Shown here: piece after piece, positions 9,276 through 63,878 of the stretch
Numbering within the stretch: the first letter of the stretch is position 1
How the letters are laid out: every line of letters starts with the position of its first letter
NCBI GenBank assembly: GCA_965112735.1
Contig: OZ218950.1
Span: forward strand, 248,001 to 312,000
Origin: Phaeosaccion multiseriatum
Lineage: Eukaryota; Protista; Ochrophyta, other classes
Length of the DNA: 64,000 bases
Reading direction: 5' to 3'
The notes under the pieces: generated by a model
The model's database searches: none
Seen by the model: the letters and a program-made list of their open reading frames with translations, nothing else
What the model was told of the DNA's origin: nothing
Made by a program: the position numbers and the translations under genes

Positions 9276-27593
<18,318 letters not shown>

Positions 27594-36193: not shown

Positions 36194-36847
36194 TTAGTTC
36201 CAGGTGTAAGCCTGTCCGAGGATGTCGTTGATGATGTAGGGGCGGCCGTTGAGCTGCTCGTGGACCATGAGGGCGAGGATGCCCATCTGCGCGGCGCGGC
36301 CGTTGTTGAGCTCGATGGAGCGCTTGCGGCTCTGGGTCTCCTCGTCCCAGGATGCCCAGGTGGAGTTCTCTCCGAACCTGTTCATGTCACCGGGGGTGGA
36401 GCCCTCCACCTGCTGCATGACGGCCAGCTCGAGGAAGCCGATGAAGGCGACCAGCTGGGCAATGCCGGCGGCGGGGATCTTGGAGAAGGCGGCAAGTCCG
36501 TTGGGCACGTCCGTGAACTTGATGTTCTCGGAGATGGAGAGGTATCCGGGCAGGCGCACGTTCTGCTGCACAAGGTGACCAGCGATGGCAAGCATGGAGA
36601 TGCGTCCGTGCTTCACCTCGACGTATCGGAGTCGGTCGAATCGCTCCTGGTCGGCGTCGTTGAGGAGTCCGAGGGGGTCGAAGAATCCGAGAGGGGCCTG
36701 TGCTCCCTCGGCGTCCTCGAAGGCCATCTTCATGCTGCTGGAGCTCTTGGGGGCCTTGGCAACCGCGCTGCCGGTGAAGGCGGTGGGCGCCACGAAGGCG
36801 GAGGCGCACCCGAGGGTGGCCAGAGCGGCGACGCAGGCAGTCTTCAT
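36194..36847 (-). CDS. Lhcf: Fucoxanthin-chlorophyll a/c light-harvesting protein (Lhcf family), intronless
   Basis: ASAFVAP presequence; GAQAPLGFFDPLG, EVKHGRISMLA, ELNNGRAAQMG. Confidence 0.95.
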   Translation of the reverse strand: MKTACVAALATLGCASAFVAPTAFTGSAVAKAPKSSSSMKMAFEDAEGAQAPLGFFDPLGLLNDADQERFDRLRYVEVKHGRISMLAIAGHLVQQNVRLPGYLSISENIKFTDVPNGLAAFSKIPAAGIAQLVAFIGFLELAVMQQVEGSTPGDMNRFGENSTWASWDEETQSRKRSIELNNGRAAQMGILALMVHEQLNGRPYIINDILGQAYTWN

Positions 36848-37089: not shown

Positions 37090-38247
37090 ATGCCTTCCCA
37101 AGCTGTCGTCACTCTTGCGCTGTTGGTGCCCTCCGTGGCGCTGCTCCACTCGGGAGCGCATGCCTTCACGGCGCCCTTGGCAGCAGGGAGGGTGGGGAGG
37201 GTAGGAGGGGCCAGCAGGGCAGCCAGCGCCACCACGCAGCTGTCTGCGGGCGCGGGGGCCTTTGGCACGGGCGGCTTCTTCGGCAAGAAGCCCGAGGTGG
37301 ACTACATGACGCCCAAGAGTGAGTACGCCAACACTCCCGGCTCGCTCACCGAGACAGAGGAGCTTATCGGCGAGATCATGGTCACGGACGATGCCAGCGC
37401 CTCCAAGCTGGCCGACGACTGCATTTTGGAGGCCGAGCGCCTGTTCACGTCCAAGGAGGGCTGGAAGGGCGTGCTGGAGCAGGACGGGGTGTTCGTGGAG
37501 CAGAAGGACTTGCACGGGGCCTTTGGCAAGTCGGGTGTCAAGCTGGTGCGGGGCGTGGGCATCATCGACGCCTCGGCAGAGGACTTTTACAAGTTCCAGG
37601 TGTCCCGGGAGGGCTTCCAGGCCATTGACGAGTACCTGGTGAACCACCGCAATGTGGGCAAGTACACATGGGAGACGGAGGAGAAGAACGGCTACACCAA
37701 AGACGACTACGAGCTCATGATGAACAGGGTGGAGTGGCAGTACCCCACCAAGACCAGGGAGTTTGTGGCGCTCGACACTATCGACAGGAAGCGCAAGATT
37801 CTCATCTCCAAGAGCGCGCTGCACCCCGACCGCCCGGGGGGCAGCCGCTACCAGGACGACGTGCCCTTGGACGAGGACGAGTTTGTGAGGGCTGTGCAGT
37901 ACTACGCCAGCAAGGTGGACGAGCTGGAGGATGGGCGCTGCTTGCTCACCATGGTCACCTGGGGGGAGATGTGCGATTCGTACAGCTCATGGTGGGTCAA
38001 CAAGTTCAACGCACACGTTTTCATCACGCCCAAGTTCGAGCGCTTCAAGCGGGCCATGCAGGGGGAGGACGTGTTCGAGCTCAGTGACATTGTCAAGGAG
38101 GCGTGGAAGCTGCCTGCTCTGCTCATGGTGAAGCCCGACACAGAGTCCTCCAACGCCTCCGACTTTGTCAAGAAGGAGATGGACAAGGCCGCGGCGGCAA
38201 GAGAAATCAGCAGAGACTCGGACATGTACGATGACAAGAAGGCATGA
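37090..38247 (+). CDS. Plastid-targeted START/SRPBCC lipid-binding domain protein, intronless
   Basis: 385-aa ORF with strong coding bias. Signal peptide followed by AHA-FTAP. START-like pattern WKGVLEQDGVFVEQK...YPTKTREFV...ILISKS..HP...FVRA. Confidence 0.7.
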   Translation: MPSQAVVTLALLVPSVALLHSGAHAFTAPLAAGRVGRVGGASRAASATTQLSAGAGAFGTGGFFGKKPEVDYMTPKSEYANTPGSLTETEELIGEIMVTDDASASKLADDCILEAERLFTSKEGWKGVLEQDGVFVEQKDLHGAFGKSGVKLVRGVGIIDASAEDFYKFQVSREGFQAIDEYLVNHRNVGKYTWETEEKNGYTKDDYELMMNRVEWQYPTKTREFVALDTIDRKRKILISKSALHPDRPGGSRYQDDVPLDEDEFVRAVQYYASKVDELEDGRCLLTMVTWGEMCDSYSSWWVNKFNAHVFITPKFERFKRAMQGEDVFELSDIVKEAWKLPALLMVKPDTESSNASDFVKKEMDKAAAAREISRDSDMYDDKKA

Positions 38248-45105: not shown

Positions 45106-46211
45106 CTACTTGCTCTTGGGCGTCTCCTCGGGACAGGAGCCCCCCCCCCGCCTCTGCGCCACAAGCTTGGCGCCAAGCATTCTGCAGGCGGCATTGGCCG
45201 TTGGTTACGCAGCAGTTGGTTCCGCAGCAGTTGGTTCCGCAGCAGTTGGTTCCGCAGCCGTTGGTTCCGCAGCCGTTGGTTCCGCAGCCGTTGGTTCCGC
45301 AGCAGTTGGGTTTTACGCAGCCGTTGGTTCCGCAGCAGTTGGGTTTTACGCAGCCGTTGGTGCGCAGCAACCGTTCCATCGCGAGGGGAAGGTAGACGAG
45401 GAGGAGGGGGGAGCCGAAGCGGGTGAGAAGGAGAGAGAGTAAGACAGTATCTAGTGAAGTGTAATGGAAAGCGAGTGAATTCCTCGGATGTTTGTTTCCT
45501 TCCCCTCCCTCCCTTCCTCCCTCCCTCCTTCCTTCCTTCCTTCCTTCCTTCCTTCCTTCCTTCCTTCCTTCCCTCCTTCCTTCCTTCCTTCCTTCCTTCC
45601 CTCCTTCCTTCCTTCCTTCCTTCCTTCCTTCCTTCCTTCCTCCCCCGACCACCCAAGCACGCACCCACCCCACAATCATGGCGGGCAGGTAGTAAAGCGC
45701 CACACTGGAGGAGCCCGTCGTCCCCACCATAACCGCTGAGTGAGGAGGGAAGAAGTGGAGCATATGAGAGGGAGAGAGGAGGGAGGAGGGAAGGAAGGAA
45801 GGGAGGGGGTGGTTGGGTGAGTGACAGAGGAGTGGTGGAGGAGGGAAGTGAGCGAGTGAGTGTGTGTGTGAGTGAGTCGGTGTGTGTGTGTGAGTGAGTG
45901 AGTGAGTGAGTGAGTGAACGAGTGAGTGAGTGAGTGAGTAAGTAAGTGAGTGAGTGAGTGAGTGAGTGAGTGAGTGAGTGAGTGAGTGAGTGAGTGAGTG
46001 AGTGAGTGAGTGAGTGAGTGCGTGAGTGAGTGAGTGAGTGAGCGTGCCTCAGGTGCCGGAACCGACCCTCTCCTACCTGGCCCCGGACACATGCCGCCGA
46101 CGGCCCATCCTACCCCGAAGATGGCGGCCCCGAGGACGAGCTTGGCATCCACCACTTTGTTCGTCGGTATCTGTGAGGAGAGAGACAGACAGACAGGCAG
46201 ACAGGCAGACA

Positions 46212-46242
<31 letters not shown>

Positions 46243-46245
46243 GGG

Positions 46246-46282
<37 letters not shown>

Positions 46283-48196
46283 GGGGTCAGTTCCGATTGC
46301 CTCTTTTGGGGCCACCCATCCAAGGCAGTAAGTCAGCAAGTCATTGAGTAGTTCTTCAGCGGCACAACGTCCTCCTACCTGGAAGCTCGTGGGGCACCCT
46401 GCCGTGAGTGCGTGTGTGCCCTCGCCACCCTCGGCCTCCGCCTTGGGAGGGCCACTGGAAGAGCCACCGGTAGGAGCGAGGAGGGGTGCACCCTCTGCCC
46501 GCTTGGGAGGGGCACTTTCTGCAGCAGCAGCGAGGAGGGGCTTGTCAAAGCGCTTCGTGATGAAGCGGAAACCAAAGAAGCACAGCGGTACCGCAGACCC
46601 CATGACGAACATGAGGGAAGGGTCCCAATTATCGGGACCCAAAGTAAGGAAGTTCCAGATCTTGGCTCTGTCGCCCATGCCCTGAGGGAAGCAACAGTTA
46701 CAAAACAACAGTTACAAAAGGAGAGGAGAGGAGGAGGGGTCGAGATGGGGTAGGACCAGGCGTTAGGTGGGCATGGAGGGCGCTCGTGCCATTGGGATGG
46801 ATCAAGAGGAGGAGACCAACCCAGACATTCCCGAGTTTCAAAGACAACCCCTTTGGTCTGCGCTGTCCTGTCCTGCCCATACACCTCTACTCTACCCTGC
46901 CCTGCCCACGCAGCTCTACTCTACCCTGCCCTGCCCATACACCCCTTCTACCCTGCCCTACCCATACACTTCTCTCACCGAGATGCCCAGGCCGACTGAG
47001 AACATCGCCCCGCACAGCGCCGACACCCACGACGTGTTGAATCCTATCCGCATCTCAGTGCCCTTCGCCAGAGCCAACACCGCCGCTGCCAGGCTCACGG
47101 CCCTTACGGTGTCTGACTTGGGCTCGACGAGGGACCCGACGGCGGGGGAGCCCAGCAGTTGGTGATACGCGAGGGTGGTGGAGTTGATGACACCGACAGA
47201 CATGAAGGTAGCGACAGCGACGATGCTGCGCTTGGAGAGGCGAGACAGCCCCGAGATACCGTGGCCGCTGAGGGAGGAGGAGGCAGGAATGGAGTGGTGG
47301 TGGTGGTGGTGGTGGTAGTGGTGGTGGGGAGAGGGGCGGGAGGGGGGGTTAGGGAGGGTGGAATGGCAGGAGGGAGAGGATATGAGGGAGAGGGAGAGAG
47401 GGAGAGAGGGGAGAGATGGAGAGAGACACCTTTGCCGACATTTGTGTGTAGTGTGTTTGTTTCCCTCTCTACCCTGCGTGTGTGTGTGTTCCTCCAGCTC
47501 GTCTTGCCTGGTGCATCCGTTTGCCAGCCTGGTCCCGAAGCCCACGAGCAGTCCCCCTGTCATGAGCTGCAGGGGTGAGGAGGACACGCCTCCTAGTCCC
47601 ACACAGCCGGGCAGCAAAGAGTCGATGGCTAGAGAGCCCAGCACGAAGCCTGGGATAGAAAGAGGGTGAGGAGGGAGGGTGAGGAGGGAGAGAGGGGGGG
47701 AGGGGGGGAAGGCAGCCAACGCCCGCACAGGAGGCAAAATTCCTTCCAAGATCAGAGCCATACTGAGCCAAGCCACTCAGACGACAAAGAGCCACAAAAA
47801 GAGCTTCTTTCTTTCTTCCTCTTTCTCCCTCTCTATCTACGACATCTCTCTCTCTCTCTCTCTCTCTCTATGTGCGTCAAGCTCTCGGCGTTAGTAGTGC
47901 TATCGCACGTGCCTGCAGCGTAAGGGCCCTTCCAGTAGAAGGTAGACGAGAAGTCCTTGGACCCTAGCATGTCGAAGAAGCCCGACAGACCAGTGAGTCT
48001 CCCCGTTGCCAGCACTGTCGACGCAGAGGCGGAGGGAGGGGCATATGGTAAGCGGAGAAAGAGAGGAGGGGAGGTTTATGAATCGGAAAGTGACGCGGGC
48101 AAACTTACGGTAGTAGCACGTCGAGACGCCCAGGATAAGCCCTCCCGCAGAGGCGGGTAGTGGCGAGAATGTCGTGGGTGTTATCGGCAACTCCAT
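45106..48196 (-). CDS. YeeE/YedE (TsuA/PmpAB-like) sulfur-compound transporter, fused two-module form
   Basis: Exons 48196-48109, 48014-47913, 47649-47508, 47267-46979, 46681-46379, 46170-46077, 45735-45669, 45181-45106. Motifs: [74 protein letters not shown]. Confidence 0.9.
45206..45362. repeat. 15-16-bp tandem repeat (GCAGC(A/C)GTTGGTTCC) in last YeeE intron
   Basis: About 10 units seen directly. Confidence 0.9.
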
Positions 48197-48412
48197 GGCT
48201 GCTAGCAAGGTTGCACGACAGGAGATGATGCGGAGTGTATAAAGGGCACAAGACTTTTTTTTCGGAAATCAGGCGGAGCGGAAGGGATATCCGTATCGAT
48301 ATCCGGAAGGTCGCCAGAAAAGGCGGAAAGGCCGCCAAAAGTACGACGTAAGGCAATGAAGAAAGAGCTGGCGCGGGGGGAGGAAGGGGAGAAAAGGAGA
48401 TCATTATCAATC
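48197..48412. promoter_or_regulatory. Putative bidirectional promoter between YeeE/YedE and CoADR-rhodanese genes
   Basis: 216 bp separate the divergent ATGs. TATAAA at ~48238; CGGAAGGGATATCCGTATCGATATCCGGAAGG at ~48279-48310. Confidence 0.55.
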
Positions 48413-49390
48413 ATGAGTGAAAGGAAGAGAGTGATCATCGTTGGAGGAGTGGCGGGGGGCGCGTCTACAGGTGAGGATGGAGAGAAGAGAGAGAGAGGGA
48501 GAGAGAGAGGGGGGAAGGGAGAGGAGGAACAAAGAATAAATGTCCTGAACTCGTATCGAACAGGAGCGAGGCTCAGGAGGCTCGAGGAGGATGCGGAGAT
48601 CATCATCTTTGAGAGAGGCCCCGACCCTTCCTTTGCCAACTGTGGCATGCCCTACTACATCGGTGCGTGCGCTCTGAACTTTTACTTTTGGTTCGTCTAA
48701 AGTCCACGTAAACCCACCCTCCACCCCTCCCCTCTCTGAAGCGAGCACTACAGTAGCCAATCCTCTACTGTCTACTTCAACCCAGCCTCCTGTACTCCTC
48801 TTTCTGTTGAGTGCAGGTGGGGAGATTGAAGACAGGAGAAAGCTCAACGTGCAGAGCGCGGCATCGCTCAAGAGGAGACTGAACCTCGACGTGAGGGTCC
48901 GAACAGGTACTTGCTTGGCCTACTTCAGGGGGGAGAAAAGTGGAAGGGAGAGGTTTTGTGAGAGGCAGCAGCAGGCAGCCGCAGGAGCCAGCAGCAGGGT
49001 GGACAGTAATGACTGCTGAGAAAGAAAGAGAAAGCGACAATGTCGGGGGGGGGGGGATTTCCAGACTGAGATGCATACGTGAACCCCTATCCGCCGCTCA
49101 ACTCGTTTGTTCCTGCCGCCCCCCACACATTACTGCAAAGAGGTGGTGTCAATCGATAGAGAGGCCAAGACGGTGGAAGTTCGCCCTGTGGGCTCGGCCG
49201 TGACGACCACGGAGACCTACACGCACCTCGTGTTGAGCATTGGCGCACAGCCCTTCACCCCTCCGATACCGGGCATCGACAGAGGTACGCGTGTCTACGT
49301 GTGAAGTGAGATTGATTGATTGGTTGTGCGGTGAGACAGAACAGACAAGGCGTCTCTTTCTGCCCGTCTCCCTCCCTCCCTCCCTCCCTC

Positions 49391-49444
<54 letters not shown>

Positions 49445-49445
49445 T

Positions 49446-49495
<50 letters not shown>

Positions 49496-50491
49496 TCCTC
49501 GCCTGATGGCTACTCAGTCTACGCTGGGCCTGTCACCTGCCGTCCTTTCCTCCTCCTCCTCCGCTCGTTGTATGCTTACACCTAAAAAAGCCCAATTGCA
49601 GTTGCGTTTGTGACACCCAAGCACTCATACCACGCACCACCGTGACGATCGTTCCGCGACCTTGCCCCAGACACCAACTTCGTGCTCAGAGACCTCACAG
49701 ACATGGACAAGATCTTTGCCCGCCTCACGGGAGGGACGAGGGACGGCCAACAAGAGGGCTGCCGAAAGGCCGTCATTGCGGGTGCGTGTGTGCGTATGTG
49801 CGTGTCGAGTACCCTTCGTAGATGCTTCGTATGTGTCAGTCCCCAGAAGCAGAAGCAGGACGTTGTGGGTGCACGCGCATGTGTGTGGGTGCGTGTGTGT
49901 GTGTGTGTGCGTGTGTGTGCGTGTGTGTGCGTGTGTGTGTGTGCGTGTGTGTATGTGTGTGTGTGTGTGCGTGCGTGTTCTCACAACCACTCCTTTCCTC
50001 ACCCCTCCTCTGCAGGGGCGGGCTTCGTGGGTCTGGAGATGGCCGAGCAGCTGCAGCGGCGTGGGCTTGACGTTCACCTCGTGGAGGCGGCCCCGCAGGT
50101 GCGTGCTGGCCCCTCCACTCACTCACTCTCCCACGCACTCACTCACTCCCTCACTCACTCACTCACTCCCTCACTCACTCACTCCCTCACTCACTCACTC
50201 ACTCACTCACTCACCCACTCACCCACTCCGTCACTCACTCACTCACCCACTCCCTCCCTCCCTCCCTCCCTCCCTCCCTCCCTCCTCGAAGGTGTTGACT
50301 CCTCTCGACCCCGAGATGGCCGCCCTCTGCCAGGTGTGTGCGTGCGTGTGACGTTAGGGGAAGAGAATCAAAGAATTCAAGCATCTGGCGATGTAACACT
50401 GCATATGATCTTTGTCCACCCCATCCTCGCCCTTGCCCTCTTCGTGAATGACTGACTGACTGACTGGCTGGCTGACTAAATGAATGACTGT

Positions 50492-50528
<37 letters not shown>

Positions 50529-51660
50529 TGACTGACTGACTGACTGACTGACTGACTGAATGAATGAATGAATGAACGAATGAATGACTGACTGCCTGAC
50601 TGCCTGCCTCCCTGGCACGCCTGCAGGTTGAGCTGGAGAGCAAGGGCGTGAAGGTGTACACGAACTCGCGTATCGAGGCCTTCGAGGAGCACACAGCCTC
50701 ACAGGACCCGTGAGTGTGTTCGTGGCTGTGAGCGCGCGCGTGCTCTTGCTAGGGCGCTTCTTTCTGTCCTGGGCTGCAATGCCACACATGGCTGACTCTC
50801 TCCCTCCCTCCCTCCCTCCGTTCCTGCCTCTCCCTCCCTCCCTCCCTCCCTCCCTCCCTCCCTCCCTCCCTCCCTCCCTTCCTCCCTTCCTCCCTCCCTC
50901 CCTCCCTCCCTCCGTCCCTCCCTCCCTCCCTCCCTCCCTGCCTGCCTGCCTGCCTGCCTCCCTCCCTCCCCTCCCCTCCCCTCCCCTCCCCTCCCCTCCC
51001 CTCCCCTCCCCTCCCCTCCCCTCCCCTCCCCTCCCCTCCCTCCCTGCCTCTGCCTGCCTGCCTCTGGCTACCTCTCCGCGTGCATGGCAGCCACGCTCTC
51101 ACAGATGTTGTCATCCAAGGCGGAAGGCGTATTCCCTGCTGCCTGGTGCTGCTTGGGCTCGGGGTCAGGCCGGACACCCAACTTGCCAAGGACGCAGGGA
51201 TTGAGCTCAACGACAGAGGAGGTGAGACAGCGAAGGCTCACAAAGGGCGACGATTTTGAGCATTTCGAGGCAGACCAAAGTCGTCTCTGACGCATCGAGA
51301 ACCAGGCCGTCACTGCTGCTGTGGATGTGTGCCAATAGCCGTCTCCCTTTCCCCCTTTCTCCCTCTCCCTCTCTCTCCCCATCCCCCGCCCCCCTCCTCC
51401 TCTCTCTCCCTCTCCCTCTCCCTCTCCCTCTCCCCCTCCCCCTCCCTCTCCCCCCCACCTCTCCTATCTCGCAAACGGTCGTCGCCAAAGGCATAATCGT
51501 GGATGCCAACATGCGCACCAACGACCCCAGCATCTTTGCCGTCGGGGATGCCGTAGAGGTGGCCAATGCAGTGACTGCGGGTGGCAAGTGGATGGTCCCT
51601 CTTGCAGGACCGGCCAATCGGCAGGGGAGACTCGCAGCGGACAATATCGCTGGGTTAGAG

Positions 51661-51700
<40 letters not shown>

Positions 51701-53779
51701 TTGTGTGTGTGTGCGTGTGTGTGTGAATGTGATTGTGTGTGCGTGCGTGTGTGTGTGTGTGTGTATGTGCGTGTGTGCATATGTGTGTGCATATGTGCGT
51801 GTGTGTATGTGCGTGTGATTGTGTGCGTGTGTGTGTGCGTGTGTGCGTATGTGCGTGTTTGCGTGTGTGTGTGCGCGTGTGTGTGCGTGTGTGTGTGCGC
51901 CACCAACTCAACTCACCAGAGCCAGCCAGCCCTGTGTGGCCAGCCCTGTGGCACGGATTAGTCTGACTCTATTCCGTCCTGACACCAATGAGTCCTTCCT
52001 GTCCTGACACTGAGTGGCTCGAGGAGGCTCCTAAAGAGGGGCCAATACAAGACAGTGCAAGATCGAGGCGTGTGCGGACAGGAGAGAGTCCAAGACCAGA
52101 GCGAGCCTGCATCCTTACTCTCTTCCCTCTCTTCCCTCTACCCCCCCGGATCTCCATAAGTCAATGAACCCCCCCCCCCCCCATCTCTCCCCTCCTCTCA
52201 TACGTACAGAGTCGGTCCTACCGCGGCTCGTTCGGTACGTCGATCCTCCGCGTCTTCTCCCTCATGGCTGCTTGCACGGGGCTCAGCGAGACCGCCGTGA
52301 AGCAAGAGCTAAGGGAGGGCAAACGGACCAAGGGCTACCACACCGTCCACCTGCACCCCTCCAGCCATGCCGGGTACTACCCAGGGGCCGCACCCGTACA
52401 CCTCAAGATTGTCTTTGAGAAGGGGTCCGGGAAGCTGCTGGTGAGGGAGAGGCGGGGTGGGGCGGGCGGGAGGGAGGGAGGGAGGGAGGGAGGGAGGGAG
52501 GGAGGGAGGGTGGGAGGGAGGGAGGGAGGGAGGGAGGGAGGGAGGGAGGGAGGGAGGGAGGGAGGGAGGGAGAGAGGGAGGGAGGGAGGGAGGGGGTGGG
52601 TGGGTGGGTGGGTGGGTGAGGAGGTGAGAGAGAGAGGAGAGGGAACTACTGCCAAAGAAGTCAAGACTACCAAAGAGATGAATCCGAGAGTCCTCTTGCT
52701 CCCTTCCGACTCCCTTCTGGCTTCCCCCTGGAGAGTGGCGTCCGAGTGAGAGCACTCGCTGACTTCCTGACTTTCTCACTCACTCACTCACTCACTCACT
52801 CACTCGCTGACTGACTGACTGACTGACTGACTGACTGACTGACTGACTGACTGACTGACTGACTATCGGACTGACGGACTGACTATCGGACTGACGGACT
52901 GACGAACTGACTGACAACCGGAACCCTTCCCCCCCCCGCCGCCCCAGGGCGCCCAAGCCGTGGGCAAGGACGGTGCCGACAAGCGCATCGACGTGCTGGC
53001 GACGGCCGTGTACGCGGGACTCACAGTCGACGACCTCGCGCAGCTCGAGGTAGGCGAGTTGGTTGTTCGAGTTGTGTGCCGCAATCCGCAATTGTTGGCT
53101 GACCCCTGCTGACCCCTTGGATTGGGTTGTCGCTCCTCCGGCCATAGTCAGTCCCGAACCGTCCATGGCATCGCGACTTATTTTGGAGCGCATTATTGTT
53201 ACTACTCTCTCCCTCTCTCTCTTTGTCTTGTTTCCTTCTGGCCCCTCCGCTCTGCCCGCCCGCCTCTCTCTCTCCCTTTCTTCCCCCCTCTCTCTCTCCC
53301 TCTCTCTCTCCCTCTCTCTCCCTCTGTCTCTTCCTCTCTGTTATTCCCCTCCGCCCAACGCATCGTGAAGTACCATCTACCGCTCTGATCGCCGCGCGTT
53401 GCCGTCCATCCATTGCCATCCATTGCCATCCATTGCTCCCTCTCAGCTGTGCTACTCCCCTCCCGTGGGCTCGGCCAAAGACTGTGTCAACTTCGCAGGC
53501 ATGATTGGTCAGGTGTGTGTGTCTGTGTGTGTTTGTGTGGGAGTGTGTGTGAGTGTGTGTGTGTGTGTGTATGTGTGTGCGTGTGTGGGTGCACTCGGCT
53601 GCTGGGAAAGGATGGCACTCCATGGATCGACAGCTCTCGTAGCTTATCACCACCTGTTGTACTTCGGCTGGGATGATTGTGCCCATCCAGTGAGGGTGGA
53701 GAATGGGTGCATGAATGCCGTATGCCTTCTCACCACCTCTCTTCCTTCTCTTTCTCTCTTGTCTCTGTCTGTCTGTCTC

Positions 53780-53862
<83 letters not shown>

Positions 53863-54547
53863 GGCTGGCTGGCTGTCTGTCTGTCTGTCTGTCTCTCTTC
53901 TCCCCTCCCCTCCCCTCCTTGCCGTTACAGAATGTTTTGGGTGGTCTGGTGAGCGTGGTGCAATGGTCCGAGCTCGAGGCTCTGGCCAAGGACGACGACG
54001 TATTCCTGCTTGACGTGCGCGGCCCTGGGGAGCTCCAGGCCCCCGGGGGAGAGCTGCGCCCCCCGGGGGAGTGTGCCAACATTCCTATTGACGAGCTCAG
54101 GAGCAGGCTCGACGAGGTGAGGGGGGAGGGTAGCAGTTTGAGTTTTGCGTCCGAGTTTGGGTTTGAGTTTGAGTTTGAGCTTGGCAGCAGCAGCGGCGGG
54201 GCGTACGAGATGCCCGCAATACTCATCCACACACTCGTCCACTCATTCCTTTCACTCCCTCGCCTCCATTGGCCTGCTTGCCTGTTTGCTTGCCTGTTTG
54301 CCTGCCTGTTTGCTTGCCTGCTGCCTGCCTGCCTGCCTGTCTCTTGCTTGCTTACTGAGCTTGGGCCCCTCCCTCCCTCCGATGCCCACATCCACAGGTG
54401 CCCAAGGACAAGCACATTGTGGTGTCTTGCCGGACAGGGCAACGTTCCTACTACGGCTGCCGCATCCTGCTGCAGAAGGGCTACGAGAGAGTCAGCAACC
54501 TCTCGGGGGCTTACTTGACCTACTCCTCAACCACCGCCATCAGCTGA
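48413..54547 (+). CDS. CoA-disulfide/persulfide reductase with C-terminal rhodanese domain (CoADR-RHD / Npsr-like)
   Basis: 15 in-phase exons: 48413-48470, 48564-48662, 48817-48906, 49141-49284, 49671-49781, 50016-50098, 50292-50333, 50627-50709, 51091-51221, 51491-51660, 52210-52440, 52948-53049, 53447-53512, 53931-54116, 54398-54547. Motifs: GGVAGG (FAD), SFANCG (redox Cys), GAGFVGLE (NAD(P)H), [34 protein letters not shown]; rhodanese LDVR...NIPIDEL...CRTGQRS. Confidence 0.93.
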
Positions 54548-55484: not shown

Positions 55485-55790
55485 GGCGTCTTTTTGTAGC
55501 CAAACTGTATACAAACGGGAGAGTGATGAGTGATAAGGCGTCTTTTTGTAGCCAAACTGTATACAAACGGGAGAGTGGTCTTTTTGTAGCCAAACTGTAT
55601 ATAAACGGGAGAGTGATGAGTGATAAGACGTCTTTTTGTAGCCAAACTGTATACAAACGGGAGAGTGATGAGTGATAAGGCGTCTTTTTGTAGCCAAACT
55701 GTATACAAACGGGAGAGTGATGAGTGATAAGGCGTCTTTTTGTAGCCAAACTGTATATAAACGGGGGAGTGATGAGTGATAAGGCGTCTT
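55485..55790. repeat. 52-bp minisatellite, ~6 units (GGCGTCTTTTTGTAGCCAAACTGTATACAAACGGGAGAGTGATGAGTGATAA)
   Basis: Seen directly; one unit is internally deleted. Confidence 0.92.
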
Positions 55791-56248: not shown

Positions 56249-57444
56249 TCATTCGTCCTGCTTCACCCTTGCTTCTCCGAACAGAGGGGCGGACTTGCTT
56301 ACGTCAAGGTTTTGAATGCGGCACACTCCCACAACCCTCTGCAGCAGAGGGGAGGGACAGGGGAGGGACAGGGGAGCGGGGAGGGCGGGGAGTGAGAATA
56401 AGAGGGGCGTGTGGAGGCACGGGAAGCAAGGAAGTAGGTAGAGGGCTCAGCACTCAACGGGCAGGCAAAAGGGGGCCAAGAAAACAACAGAGAATCCGTA
56501 GTACTGCTGTAGTGGCCAGGCTGATCCACTGATCCACTGATCCACTGATCCACTGATTCACTGATCCACCTCCTCCCCCTGTGTACCGTGACCGGCAGCA
56601 CACAGCTTGCAGTATGCAGCATGGCAGCGCTTGGTGACTCAACAGCACCGTCTCCAACACGCTGAGCCTGCTCCCTCCCACCCTCCCTCCCGGTCTCCCT
56701 CCCTCTCCCTCTCCCTCTCCCTATCTCTCGAACTCCCACCTCTCAGCCCTTCCGCACTCTCCTCTCTCTGACTCCTCCTTCCGCTCCCGCTCTCCCTCCC
56801 TCTCACTCACACACACCTCTGGTAGCTCTCCCTGCTCCCTCCCCTCCAGTGTAACTGCCACGTCCACGACGAGGGCCTTGGCGGCTCCGACGCACAGAGA
56901 CACAATGTTGTAGGCCACAGCGCTGCTCGCCACATCCACATCCTACAGGCGTATGGGGGATGGCAGTGGGTGGCAGCGGATGGATTTAGAGGAATATGGG
57001 AAGGGAGGATGGAGCACAAGGTGCAGATGCAGTGGGGTAAGTAGGTGGGTGGGTGGGCGGGAGGGAGGGAGGGGAGGGAGGCGGGTGAAGGGCTGCTACT
57101 GTGACACCAACTACTGCTGCAGCTGATGTTGTATCACCAACTGCAGCTCGTTCCACTGCCTGCCTAGCCCTCGCCCCTCTCTCCCTCTCTCCCACTACCC
57201 TCTCCTGCCCTCACCGTCTCTACGTAGCAGTCTCCGCGGAAGTAGCGCTGCGTGAGCTTGCGGCCCAGCAGAGTGGGCTTGCCTCCCACGGCCCTCTTCA
57301 CGACCCAGGGGCCGTCGATCACGCGCGGGCAAACCTTGAAGCGCTGGTAGCAAACAGGGGAGAGGGGAGAGGGGAGAGGGGAGGGTTGAGAGGGAGGGGG
57401 AGGGTGAGGGTCAGAGTTAGCGGCAGAGGCAGGGTCAGGGTGAC

Positions 57445-57477
<33 letters not shown>

Positions 57478-60400
57478 CATCAGAACCAGGGGCAGGGTCA
57501 AGGGCTAGAGCAGCAGGCTCCATCCTCCCCACCTGATTGCGGAAGTCGCTTTGGGGCAGGAAGCCGCGGTTTCCGTCGTCGACGTTTGTGTCAATGTCCT
57601 CCTCCTCCTCGGCCTTGGGCACATCTGCAAAGGCCCTCAGCAGTCGGATGAAGCGCCGCTCCTCCACGCTGCCGTACGCCTCCTCCCTCTCCGAGGGAAG
57701 CGCGAACACAGTCACAAAGGATAGGCACGGCTTGCCAGGTATCTGGTAGTTGGCGATGAAGAAGAAGGGTCCCCCACCCCCTCCATCTCTGCCTCCGCCT
57801 CCCCTCCCACCAGCGGCACTGCGGAGCCTATCCATGACGTCCTTACACCTTCCCTGCCTGGCAATGTGGTCTGCTCGAGACAAAGATGGCGGCAACGTGT
57901 ACAGCTCCGCGTGAACCAACACACCCATCGCCGGTCCCGAGGCCGCCTTCACCCTGTCCATCATGTAGTACTCTCCCCTCAGGCTAAAGTCACAGCTGGC
58001 ACCGATGTCCACCATCATCTCTCTTAGCTCGGGTCGGGCAGGGGACGCCTCCGGAGCAGCCGCGCTCATCATGTCCGCAAGCGCGGTGGTGGTCGGGGCG
58101 GGAGACATACGCGAGGAAGAGGGCTTCATACCCTTCCCACTCTTGCTCTTGCTCTTACCCACCAACCCTCTTCTCGACCGTCTTGATCCCTGCTGCTGCG
58201 GCTGCTGCTCTGGGCCGGTGGTGAAGCGGGTCGCTCTGTGAGAAAGAGAGAGGGAGTGTGTGTGTGTGTGTGTGTGTGTGTGAGCAACAGAGAGAGATGA
58301 GGGATAGATGGATGGAGAGGGAAGGGTGGAGAGAGAGAGGGAGAGAGAGAGTGAAAATGTGTGAGAGCGAGAGAGGGCGGGGTAGAGGTAGAGAGAGTGT
58401 GAGAGAGAGTGAGTGTGTGTGTGTGTGTGAGAGAGAGACCAGAGAGAGCGAGAGAGAAAGAGGTGGCAAAAACAAAAAGCAACGGCAACAAAAGAATCAG
58501 AAGAAAGGGCGACGCGTGCCCTCCCCACCTCTTCCCCCCTCAAACCCCATCCACTGCCATCCGTACCTTCTGTCGCCCTCCCACCCTCCTCCACCCTCCT
58601 CCCTGGCCCTCCTACTCTCCTCCGCCGTGACGAGGGTTTCCAGATCGTCATCCGACAAGGGCACCGCGAGTGCGTGAGGGTCGAGCGTATGCAACCTCAC
58701 TGCCCCGAGAAGCTGCTCAGGCAACTCATCCGCTGTGCGCCCTGGGGAAGGGGGTGACGGTGCAGGGGTTTGAGTTTGAGTTGTGTGTGGCGTACATGTC
58801 TGCGTCTAGGAGGATGTGGGTGTGTGAGTGGGTGCGTCTCACGAAAAGAAAGTGCCTCTCTTCTAGACTGCCCCTCGGCCGACTCACTGAGTGCACTTAC
58901 TCACTCACCCACTCACTCACTGACTGACTGACTGACTGACTGACTGACTGACTGGCTGACTGCCCGACGGACATGCGGGCTGCCTAACTGATTGACGGAT
59001 TGAGGACGGATTGAGGACGGATTGACGACAGACTGACTGACTGCCGATCGACTGACACCAGGCACTGATTGACTGACACCAGGCACTGATTGGCTGAAAC
59101 TGGGCACTGACCTTCAAGAGTGAGTCCCAGGTCGATGACGAGCTTCCTCCCGTTCTTGGCACATAAGTGTGCGGCCTTCAGAGCCACGGTCGATGAGCCG
59201 ATGCACACGTCCACCTGACACACGCACACATCCACGCACGCACACACACACACACACGAGGGCACGGGGTGAAGAGAGGCCTGGCAGGCTACGCTGCTTC
59301 TGAGACGAGAGTGAGACGAACGCAACGCACGGTGAGCCAGAGCCTCACGCCCTGGCTATCTGACACCTGACACTACAGACAGATAGATAGACAGACAGGC
59401 AGACAGACAGACAGGCAGACAGATAGACAGATAGACAGACAGATAGACAGACAGATAGACAGACAGATAGACAGACAGAGAGACAGGCAGACAGACAGAC
59501 GGACAGACACCTGCCACCTGACTGCCGCCAGCACAGAGCTCAAGCGTGCGCTTCGTTCGTCATCCTCGTCATCCTCGTCATCCTCGTCATCCTCGTCATC
59601 CTCGTCATCCTCGTCATCCTCCAGAGCCACGCCCTACAACTCACAGGGCCCTTGCTCACTCATGAGCGCATCAGTCCTCATGTCCGCCTCACAGAGTCAA
59701 TCAGTCAGTCAATCCACCAATAAACAAATCAATCAAGCCAGCATATATATAAAGCCATCAACCAGTCAGTCAACCAGTCAATCAACCAGTCAATCAATCA
59801 GCCAATCAATCGATCAATCACGTCACTCCTACCTCTCTCCCCCCTCGCGGCGCTTCCCCTCTTACCGCTTACCGCACTCCCTCCCTCGCTCCCTATCAAT
59901 TCTATTCACTGCCATCTGACAGACCCATCATCATTCACTGCCATCTGACAGACCCTTCACTACCATGAGACTTCTCCGCCCTCCCTCCCTCCTTCCTTCC
60001 TTCCCTCCTTCCTTCCCTCCCTTCTTCCTTCCCTCCTTCCCTCCCTCACTCACTCACTCACTCACCTCCAGATATCCTTGCCCCCTAAAGTAGCGCAGCA
60101 TGAGTCTCTGCCCGATGAGTGTGGGCGTCTGAGGCAGCGACTTGGCTAACCAAGATCCCTCCACTATAGTGGGAATGAGCTTGAGCCGCTCGTTCTGGAA
60201 AGAGTCCTTGCCCAGCACCCCGGAGCGGAGACCCTCTTCTTTCTCGCCGCCCTCCTTGTCAGAATCAGCACCGGCGGCATCACTCTGCAGCAGCGCCTCA
60301 CCTTCACCACCTGCACTATCAAATGCTGCTGCTACTGCTGCTGCTTCTGGCCTCTCTGCTACATCGTCATCATCACTATCACCATGGCCATCCCCATCCA

Positions 60401-61626: not shown

Positions 61627-63878
61627 AGAGTGAGGGTGAGAGTGGGGGTGAGAGTGGGGGTGAGAGGTGGGGGTGAGAGTGGGGGTGAGGGGTACCCCTC
61701 TGATGAATGCTCACCTTAAGTTTGTCAGAGAGATAGTGCCGCCCGCGAAGCTCGAACTGACTGCTGCCCAGGCCTGTCAGTACGGAGGGTCGTTGAGGCG
61801 GATGGCAGTGGAGGTATGGCAGTGGATGAAGAAGGGCGGGGGGGGGGGGGGGGGGGAGATGGCAGTGGAGGGAGGAGTCGTGGGGATGGCAGTGAATGGA
61901 GGGTGGGGGAAGGGGTGGGGTTGTTGGAGGGAGAAGGTGGGGGGTAGCACCACAACATCGCCCACAGGGAAGTGGAAAGGCAACAAAGGCGGGCTGCATC
62001 ACCAACTGCTGCAGCTGGAGACAAGCTCTTGCCCCCTACTAGATATGAACCCTCCACACATCCACCCATCCACCCATCTATCCACACGCACACACACATG
62101 CACACACCTGCATCCTCTACGTGGTCCCACAGCTCCGGACGCAGCCTGGGCATCCCCGGTGGGCCCCCTGGGGTCCCCCCTGGGAAAAGGCCACTCCCTC
62201 CAGGGGAAAGGCTGAAAGACGAAGTGGCCCGGATCGAAGCCGCGGAGGACATTGAGCCCGTCCCGCGCCTATACGGATTAAGTTTGAGTTTCAGTTGTTA
62301 GGTTGGTTCGCCATTCAGTTTCTAAGATTCAAGTGCGATGAAAGGAAGGCGGTCAGTCACCATTTCAGATTGAGACAACGAGCAGGAAGAAGCCTTCGAA
62401 CCTCTCCCTCCCTACCTCCCTCCCTCCCTCCCTCCCCTCCTTCCCCCCATCCACTGCCATCCCTCCCTCACCGATGGCCTTGTCTGGGCCTCTCGTACAG
62501 CGGCTCCGGCGTCCGCTCCCCCCACTGCAGCCGGTCCACCCTTATCGTCCCCAGCACCTCCTCGGGTAGCTCCTCCTCAGAAGCGGCCTCCAAGAGGAAA
62601 CCTTCGCGGGGGATGGCAGTGGATGAGATTGAGGGAGGAGGGAGAGAGAGAAGGAGGGAGGAAGGAGGGAGGGAGGGAGGGAGGGAGGGAGGGAGGGAGG
62701 GAGGGGGGTGGGTGGGAGAGAGCAAATAAACTGACTGAAAATGGGGGGGTGGCAGTAGATGGGACAACTTCATCGATACATATCGTACCTTCGACATGAT
62801 ACATCGACATCGATACATCGATAAATAATTCCTTCGACTTATCACCCTCCCCCGAACCATGACGTAGCACAGCAGCATACGGAACATTACGTAGGCACGT
62901 ACCTAAGTCCAACACCATGTCCTCTGTGTGTGGAAGCACCTTGCCCACCACTGCCTCGGCCCACACCGAGGCCGTCAGGTCCACACACGTCTCCATGTAG
63001 CACAAGCCTCGGAAGTGTCGCAGAGGGATGTGCTGCCCGACACGCTTGGGGCCTCCGCTGTCTGCGGCGGTGCGTGCCGCCCAGTGGCCTTGAGCTACCT
63101 TGGAGATGACCTTTGGGATGGGATTGAGAGAGATATTGAAAGGGGGGGGAGGGAGGGAGGGAGGAAGAGAGAGAGCGAGAGCGAGAGAAAGAGGGAGAGA
63201 TATGAGATACATGTATACAATACGAGAGAGGTATGAGAGAGAGAAGGGAGAGAGAACATGCGAGAAAGAGAAACAGAGAGAGAAGAGAGAGAGAAAGAGA
63301 GAGAAGAGAGAAGGGAGAGACCGAGGGAGAGAAGTGATAGAGGAACGAAGCGAGAGAGAGGCAATCCACAGAGACGGCAGCAGAGAGGGTTAGTCAGCTG
63401 CATGGCAAAGGAGTCACGCCATGCACGTCCTGAATGAACTGAAACGGACATGCAAACGAAAATGAAAACTGGCGACACCGACCTTGAGTCGCTGATTGCG
63501 AAAGTCCGTCTTCCCGAGGGGGGCATCCCCCGACCACCATGCGACCCCCTCGGGAAGGGCTGAGTGGACAGGGAGGCTGCAGTAGCGCAGCAGGAGAGAG
63601 ACGAACTTGTCGCTACCGCTCTCATGCTCTCTGTCCGTCTCTCTGTCTGTCTGTCGCTGTCTCTGTCTGTGGCTGGAGCTGTGGTTCCTAACGCTAGTGC
63701 TGTCCAAGCCGCTGGTCTGGACACCTCTGTCTCCTGCGCCTGCACCTGTGGGGGGGTGGTGGTTCGGGGGGCCTGCTGAAGCGGATGCTGCTGTATCACC
63801 AACTGCTGGTGCTGCTGCTGCTGCTGCTGCTGCTGCCTCATGGCTTGAATCTGAGGCCTCCTCTCTTGTCATGGGGGT
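56249..63878 (-). CDS. Protein with at least three tandem EDR2 C-terminal (DUF1336) domains; 5' end beyond window
   Basis: Three copies of the pattern FRN.R.K....(I/V)..G.W.......P..(I/L/V)G......(Y/H)FRG..Y.E...D...S..A......LVID.G..LE.....ELPE..LG..R. FELRGRHYLSDK and FSLRGEYYMMDR open repeats 2 and 3. Last exon 56338-56249 (RVVGVCRIQNLDVSK...). Confidence 0.85.
61262..61690. repeat. (TGAGGG)n-type intronic hexamer repeat
   Basis: Seen directly; a similar tract lies at ~57400-57480. Confidence 0.85.

Follow-up and report, generated by a model that had tools for sequence, protein, structure and literature searches.

The 64,000-nucleotide stretch of Phaeosaccion multiseriatum DNA analysed here (contig OZ218950.1 of assembly GCA_965112735.1, positions 248,001 to 312,000 of the forward strand) is called the window below and is numbered from its first letter. 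It carries two putative sulfane-sulfur genes that lie head to head: one on the minus strand for a transporter of the YeeE/YedE superfamily, and one on the plus strand for a CoA-persulfide-reductase-like flavoenzyme that ends in a rhodanese domain (the CoADR-RHD type). The original prediction, made from the letters of the sequence, had proposed the pair as a unit for the uptake and reduction of reactive sulfur. The region was translated in six frames, and homologues served as guides for the gene models (P0001 for the transporter; P0015, P0023 and P0049, by tblastn, for the reductase). Every exon junction was scanned for frame-consistent GT/GC...AG splice sites, and both coding sequences were then assembled (Table 1). 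Statements about whole proteins come from local BLAST and HMMER runs and from close homologues, while Pfam was run on exon pieces.

The transporter model, which lies on the minus strand, consists of 8 exons separated by 7 introns and runs from the start ATG at 48196-48194 to a TAG stop at 45108-45106. The reductase model has 15 exons and 14 introns, from the ATG at 48413 to a stop that ends at 54547. The splice-site models thus reproduced the intron counts and the nuclear character that had been proposed, and the 216-bp spacer and the four cysteine motifs (GCTSGHG, CPGP, SFANCG and CRTGQRS) were likewise recovered in the rebuilt genes. One correction to the description of the introns was needed, since two transporter donors are GC rather than GT, at introns 2 (47912-47650, CAG/GCACGT) and 3 (47507-47268, CAG/GCAAGA). 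GC-AG introns are therefore 2 of the 7 in the transporter gene, and the reductase introns are GT-AG in 14 of 14 cases. Exon 5 of the transporter is predicted to contain an insertion of low complexity that is about 50 residues long. All the tandem-repeat arrays between 45.1 and 54.5 kb fall within predicted introns and none in exons, which gives independent support to the exon models. These are two intact, intron-rich nuclear genes, and their identities and integrity are firm.

Table 1. Positions in the window of the two divergent genes, their exons, the spacer and the cysteine motifs.
Feature	Position	Strand	Basis or remark
Transporter gene, ATG to stop, 386 residues	45106..48196	-	spliced model guided by P0001; Pfam Sulf_transp and DUF6691
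Transporter exons 1-4	48196-48109, 48014-47913, 47649-47508, 47267-46979	-	splice-site search
Transporter exons 5-8	46681-46379, 46170-46077, 45735-45669, 45181-45106	-	splice-site search
GCTSGHG, residues 108-114, Cys109 at 47515-47513	47258..47518	-	split by intron 3
CPGP, residues 336-339, Cys336	46078..46089	-	Cys336 in a column conserved at 80% or more
Divergent spacer between both ATGs, 216 bp	48197..48412		ATG-to-ATG distance
Possible 19-residue N-terminal reductase extension MKKELARGEEGEKRRSLSI	48356..48412	+	in-frame upstream ATG
Reductase gene, ATG to stop, 581 residues	48413..54547	+	tblastn and splice-site search; Pfam Pyr_redox_2, Pyr_redox, Pyr_redox_dim
Reductase exons 1-8	48413-48470, 48564-48662, 48817-48906, 49141-49284, 49671-49781, 50016-50098, 50292-50333, 50627-50709	+	
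Reductase exons 9-15	51091-51221, 51491-51660, 52210-52440, 52948-53049, 53447-53512, 53931-54116, 54398-54547	+	
SFANCG, redox-active Cys46 of the CoADR-type domain	48629..48646	+	column invariant in alignment A3; aligns with 3ICR and 3NTA
CRTGQRS, rhodanese active-site loop, Cys543	54428..54448	+	aligned to the CxxGxR loops in 3ICR and 3NTA

Since the start codons are at most 216 bp apart, the promoters of the two genes must overlap. The spacer has a GC content of 52%, compared with 59% for the whole window. It contains TATAAAG at about 48239-48245, as well as two palindromes of the sequence GATATC at 48286 and 48298. An in-frame ATG of the reductase at 48356, if used, would shorten the spacer to 159 bp. 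The 19-residue extension that it would add is acidic and unlike a targeting peptide.

The families originally assigned to the two proteins agree with Pfam, profile and motif evidence. The spliced reductase aligned end to end with its database homologues at 52-58% identity with E reported as 0, and over its full length at 57-58% with the haptophyte proteins. This alignment and the Pfam matches of the transporter reflect homology and not chance similarity. The Pfam match to Rhodanese remained below threshold on the split exon pieces alone, but the domain is recorded for full-length homologues, and exons 14 and 15 align with their rhodanese part. Both dinucleotide sites of the GxGxxG type are present (GGVAGGAS and GAGFVGLE), and the single redox-active cysteine, Cys46, stands in a motif of the SFxxC(G)LPY type. 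A profile built from an alignment of 15 reductase homologues (A3) matched three solved structures over their full length with E values from 1e-222 to 1e-213, namely 3ICR (CoADR-RHD of B. anthracis), 3NTA (Npsr of Shewanella loihica, with further entries related to it) and 8A56 (CoAPR of Enterococcus faecalis). Among the 142 columns that are invariant in A3, the window protein retains 134, and the other 8 changes look conservative. It has been reported that CoAPR requires two cysteines, C42 and C508 (PMC9405070); Cys46 and Cys543 are their counterparts in the reductase. The NCBIfam models for classical CoA-disulfide reductase (TIGR03385, NF007123 and NF010037) were scored on the homologues P0198 and P0049, not on the window protein, and their cut-offs were not reached (435-450 bits against 578.8, 353 against 458, and 320-341 against 394), in agreement with membership of the rhodanese-fused subfamily and not of plain CoADR. 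Judged from its sequence, the reductase is a full-length homologue of CoADR-RHD, Npsr and CoAPR.

Among the best 120 of 8000 matches listed for the reductase, the named sequences came from the haptophytes Chrysotila carterae and Prymnesium parvum, the diatoms Nitzschia and Cylindrotheca, the xanthophyte Tribonema and many bacteria. In a tree of 104 rows (a quick IQ-TREE search; the trees of this study are quick or FastTree searches), 18 rows including every named eukaryotic reductase formed a single clade with an SH-aLRT support of 100. This clade was nested, with a support of 99, among sequences from Verrucomicrobiota, Planctomycetota, Nitrospirota, Acidobacteriota and similar bacteria. The window protein lies on a long branch as sister to the haptophyte sequences (support 93). 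Because the eukaryotic clade is nested among bacterial sequences, a bacterial ancestry of the reductase is supported, and the transfer looks old and common to several algal groups. The 14 introns agree with a long residence in the nucleus. The intron load of the gene varies widely, as the orthologue spans about 1.9 kb in Prymnesium (L001 10001-11932), 1.8 kb in Nitzschia (L002 10001-11809) and 5.1 kb in Tribonema (L085 10001-15100), compared with 6.1 kb and 14 introns in the window.

The transporter's N-terminal half matched Pfam Sulf_transp and the C-terminal half matched DUF6691, and a crude Kyte-Doolittle scan gave about 8 hydrophobic stretches. The protein retains 51 of the 54 family columns that are conserved at a level of at least 80%, including Cys109 and Cys336. 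With the halves mapped as reported previously (PMC11582611), Cys109 matches Cys91 of TsuA and the cysteine of PmpB/YedE, while Cys336 matches Cys293 of TsuA and the cysteine of PmpA/YedE. Fused relatives occur across eukaryotes, in Guillardia, Porphyridium, Gracilaria, Gonium, Seminavis, Nitzschia, Mallomonas, Ectocarpus and fungi. The window protein is at most 40% identical to any relative found (35% to the Ectocarpus protein) and lies on a long branch inside this fused eukaryotic family. A word-index search with exon 4 returned a single relative, P0001, and a metagenome scan with the same exon returned six short loci that had the conserved motif alone in common, none of them with a reductase.

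The original prediction had cited TsuA, beside PmpAB, as a known protein of the YeeE/YedE kind, but the transporter is not TsuA-like. It resembles E. coli TsuA and YedE only in local stretches, with E about 1e-5 (in BLASTP, the TsuA match covers 51 residues with E 2.7e-5). The third TsuA cysteine is lacking and the other two are kept, the position of Cys22 being occupied by threonine (GRLTGLSG). Against the cut-off of 400 bits of the NCBIfam TsuA model, the closest homologue, P0001, scored 18.7 and the corresponding half from Shewanella scored 27.2; scores were also far under the cut-off of the seleno-YedE model. On account of the local similarity, the threonine and the low score, the transporter is best described as a divergent member of a eukaryote-wide family of the fused YedE1/YedE2 (PmpB/PmpA) type. 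It has been reported that short YedE1E2 pairs import zero-valent sulfur with the formation of glutathione persulfide, that both conserved cysteines are essential, and that the long TsuA-like form was inactive in the same uptake assay (PMC10812762).

The N-termini of both proteins were inspected and no plastid presequence was seen on either, as had been noted originally. In the reductase, the Rossmann fold starts right at the N-terminus, and the first hydrophobic stretch of the transporter follows after about 15 residues. In the same window, an FCP gene carries a signal peptide with ASAF/VAP and its neighbour carries AHAF/TAP. The presequence of the FCP indicates that the missing presequences of the two sulfur proteins are a real contrast.

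Taken together, these data allow the tentative suggestion, which we hold at slightly less than even chances, that the two genes are linked in function. In this view, an FCP-bearing (chlorophyll a/c) alga has two separate, intact nuclear genes which would each be concerned with sulfane sulfur and which, in this lineage, would have acquired a short divergent promoter region in common. By analogy with bacterial YedE1E2, the transporter would most likely move zero-valent or polysulfide sulfur across a membrane by means of its two membrane-embedded cysteines, and this transport would yield low-molecular-weight persulfides on the cytosolic side. A cytosolic reductase would then take up the sulfane sulfur at the rhodanese Cys543, after which Cys46, with the help of FAD and NAD(P)H, would reduce the persulfide on CoA to the thiol and H2S. 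The outcome might be the clearance of persulfide stress or the supply of sulfide to cysteine synthesis. In this scheme we infer the substrates, the transport direction, the membrane, the co-expression from the spacer and the sequential action of both proteins.

It is also quite possible, at somewhat less than even chances, that the two are chance neighbours, i.e., that both are sulfur genes that act independently and were brought head to head by gene packing in a compact genome, with no functional or regulatory meaning. Several observations fit chance neighbours and weigh against a functional link. No transporter was found within 10 kb of the reductase orthologue in Prymnesium parvum, Nitzschia inconspicua or Tribonema minus, and in Nitzschia the two genes are on separate contigs. 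Seminavis and two further eukaryotic transporter loci have no reductase nearby, so that the pairing is missing at all six other eukaryotic loci examined. The original prediction had named an unlinked pair in related genomes as the first of three joint grounds for refutation, and this was observed, though in distant relatives only. Among the named matches listed for the reductase (the best 120 of 8000) there was none from fungi, red or green algae or a cryptophyte, all of which have the transporter. If such lineages are real, the two proteins are not obligate partners. In bacteria, the transporter lies within 10 kb in 1 of the 80 reductase loci examined (one per species, flanks of at most 10 kb), and a phmmer search found no TsuA- or YedE-type open reading frame beside these 80 reductases. 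The histories of the two genes also differ, with the reductase clade (haptophytes and ochrophytes so far) placed among bacteria and the transporter in a family found throughout eukaryotes.

The surroundings of the pair point the same way. A second head-to-head pair, formed by the FCP gene at 36197-36847 (-) and an open reading frame at 37090-38247 (+), has a similar spacer of 242 bp, so that orientation says little; the presence of other divergent and unrelated genes had been a caveat of the original prediction, and it was confirmed. The FCP gene is apparently intronless, and its best match in PDB is FCP17 from the PSI-FCP structure of Macrocystis, 9YGV (E 3.6e-93), with about three quarters of the residues identical, as estimated by reading the alignment. 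The 385-residue product of the neighbouring frame, which carries the AHAF/TAP presequence, gave no Pfam match and is seemingly unrelated to FCP. The two divergent spacers have no motif in common except purine-rich 8-mers. Ten other stretches, most of them away from the immediate flanks, were searched with Pfam; EDR2_C and short-chain dehydrogenase domains turned up in them, but no sulfur-related family.

On the other hand, that two particular sulfane-sulfur genes should become neighbours by chance, among thousands of genes, is improbable a priori (in the order of 2/N per gene, as roughly estimated). The eukaryotic comparison genomes are all distant (52-58% identity), and Nitzschia alone among them was demonstrated to carry both genes; a loss of gene order is expected at such distances even if the order matters in this alga. 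It is reported that bacterial reactive-sulfur regulons hold both CoA-persulfide reductases and YedE/YeeE transporters (PMC13467558). Moreover, the single bacterial case, in Shewanella sp. AS1 (L042 9998-12628), is an operon in which genes for the reductase, Sulf_transp and DUF6691 follow each other at distances of 27 and 9 nt, and it joins both families.

A functional link between the transporter and the reductase is thus biochemically sensible. A shared function is plausible, but it is unproven because the pairing is missing in every other alga checked. The adjacency is specific to this lineage, and it may or may not be functional. Neither family is new. The novelty lies in having one well-resolved eukaryotic member of each, and in a neighbourhood of the two genes that the other algae checked do not show.

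The existence of the Shewanella operon raises the further question of whether the alga has assembled a eukaryotic counterpart of the reductase-YedE1-YedE2 operon by a change of gene order, and not by transfer, with the spacer as a bidirectional promoter. We consider this unlikely, but if it were true, phytoplankton could take up polysulfide or elemental sulfur and convert it to sulfide for assimilation or redox buffering, which would be a sulfur source so far uncounted for eukaryotic algae.

A unit for thiosulfate assimilation, in which a TsuA-like protein would import thiosulfate and a cytosolic thiosulfate/polysulfide reductase would form sulfide for cysteine synthesis, appears improbable. 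TsuA does belong to the superfamily of the transporter, and a Thermotoga homologue of the reductase, NSR, was reported to be a thiosulfate reductase stimulated by CoA, with yeeE and nsr both induced by thiosulfate and yeeE induced 42-fold (PMC9431562). Against this stand the purely local match to E. coli TsuA, the threonine in place of Cys22, the score of P0001 and the different behaviour of the short and long types in the uptake assay cited above. In addition, no gene for a TusA-like partner (TsuB/YeeD) is known beside the transporter, although the window was not screened for one and no search was aimed at TusA-like open reading frames.

The original prediction had also allowed for a bacterial origin of the pair, and this stands for the reductase, but the place of the transporter in a eukaryote-wide fused family (fungi, red and green algae, cryptophytes and ochrophytes) means that nothing suggests a joint arrival from bacteria. 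That a bacterial operon was transferred whole and afterwards broke up into a divergent pair of nuclear genes with introns is therefore very improbable, in spite of the bacterial ancestry of the reductase and the existence of the Shewanella operon, given that the transporter is in none of the bacterial loci nearest the eukaryotic reductase clade (L003-L006, L008, L011, L012 and L020), that the pair is missing in other algae with an orthologous reductase, and that the Shewanella reductase occupies a distant position in the tree.

In the literature searched, we found no paper on a eukaryotic YeeE/YedE protein or an algal CoADR-RHD, and no eukaryotic member of either family that had been characterised. 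Both families nevertheless occur widely among algae. Should the two proteins cooperate, they would provide an algal route for the uptake and reduction of sulfane sulfur (polysulfide, S0 and persulfides). This would be relevant to how phytoplankton obtain sulfur and tolerate sulfide where waters are poor in oxygen or sulfidic, and also to eukaryotic signalling by reactive sulfur. The locus would be a cheap test bed for this, with a single promoter of 216 bp, a pair of genes and four cysteines. If the adjacency is coincidental, two well-supported gene models and a eukaryotic CoADR-RHD clade of bacterial ancestry remain, and it is still useful that the eukaryotic "YeeE/YedE" proteins are of the fused YedE1/YedE2 type rather than TsuA.

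Some side observations were made during the analysis. In the two genes, 17 of the 21 introns (45182-47912 and 49285-54397) hold long microsatellite arrays of up to about 60 copies, mostly of tetranucleotides (GTGA/CACT, TTCC, CAGG, CTCC, GGGA, CTGA and TCTG) or of GT runs. A long antisense open reading frame at 53021-54442 (473 residues) seems to be an artefact of low-complexity sequence in the introns and was discarded. GATATC occurs 10 times in the window, about the expectation from base composition, and three close pairs were seen where a rough calculation gives about 0.05. Their sites are 12-17 nt apart (2996/3008, 44942/44959 and 48286/48298); the second pair is just downstream of the transporter stop and the third is inside the 216-bp spacer. 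It may be that such paired sites form a recurring element with a regulatory or boundary role. A tandem repeat at 55488-55790 (periods of 52 and 90 nt, 2-4 copies, 97% matches), which lies downstream of the reductase at a distance of about 1 kb, yields spurious open reading frames on both strands. The EDR2_C (PF07059) matches are at 57167-58696 (-) with E 2e-22 and at 62580-63389 (-) with E 6e-6, and these stretches may be tandem paralogues or exons of a single large gene. A long stop-free stretch at 24018-27590 (+) contains a peptide, recognised by eye, which we take to be kinesin-motor-like.

Two observations concern the neighbours of the reductase in other genomes. A DUF842 (PF05811) gene is found a few kb from the reductase orthologue in both Nitzschia inconspicua (L002 15116-15701) and Tribonema minus (L085 7272-8511), and this shared neighbour may be a trace of conserved ochrophyte microsynteny. 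Downstream of the Shewanella sp. AS1 operon, genes for sulfur trafficking, namely SufE and a class-V aminotransferase (cysteine desulfurase-like), are located at L042 12720-14442 (-).

Compared with known systems, the reductase agrees with the CoADR-RHD, Npsr and CoAPR enzymes (3ICR, 3NTA, 8A56 and 6PFZ of Archaeoglobus fulgidus) in the FAD- and NAD(P)H-dependent disulfide-reductase fold, the dimerisation domain and the C-terminal rhodanese, and it has in common with them the cysteine of SFANCG and that of the rhodanese CxxGxR loop. It differs in being encoded by a nuclear gene with 14 introns within a clade of eukaryotes only, and in its rhodanese loop, which reads CRTGQRS instead of the CQLGMRG or CQVGLRG of the solved enzymes. 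The transporter has the Sulf_transp and DUF6691 halves of YedE1E2 (Cupriavidus and Sinorhizobium) and PmpAB (Serratia), with one conserved cysteine in each half and the same motifs (PMC10812762; PMC11582611). In the window, however, the halves are fused into one chain of 386 residues with a low-complexity loop of about 50 residues between them and are encoded with 7 introns, and the essential role of the cysteines is known for the bacterial proteins only (PMC10812762). TsuA (YeeE)-TsuB and YedE-YedF of E. coli belong to the same superfamily, and equivalents of Cys91 and Cys293 are present in the transporter, but the resemblance is local, Cys22 is replaced and the scores are far under the cut-offs.

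The Shewanella sp. AS1 operon contains side by side the three protein modules of the window pair. There they are co-directional separate genes, in an arrangement that is rare among the bacterial loci, whereas the two genes in the window are divergent and would give separate transcripts. Eukaryotes too have small metabolic gene clusters, for example those for nitrate assimilation in green algae. Compared with these clusters, the locus has two genes only, in a pairing seen in this lineage alone among those compared, but it resembles eukaryotic bidirectional pairs and small clusters in that two genes of one physiological area diverge from a short intergenic region.

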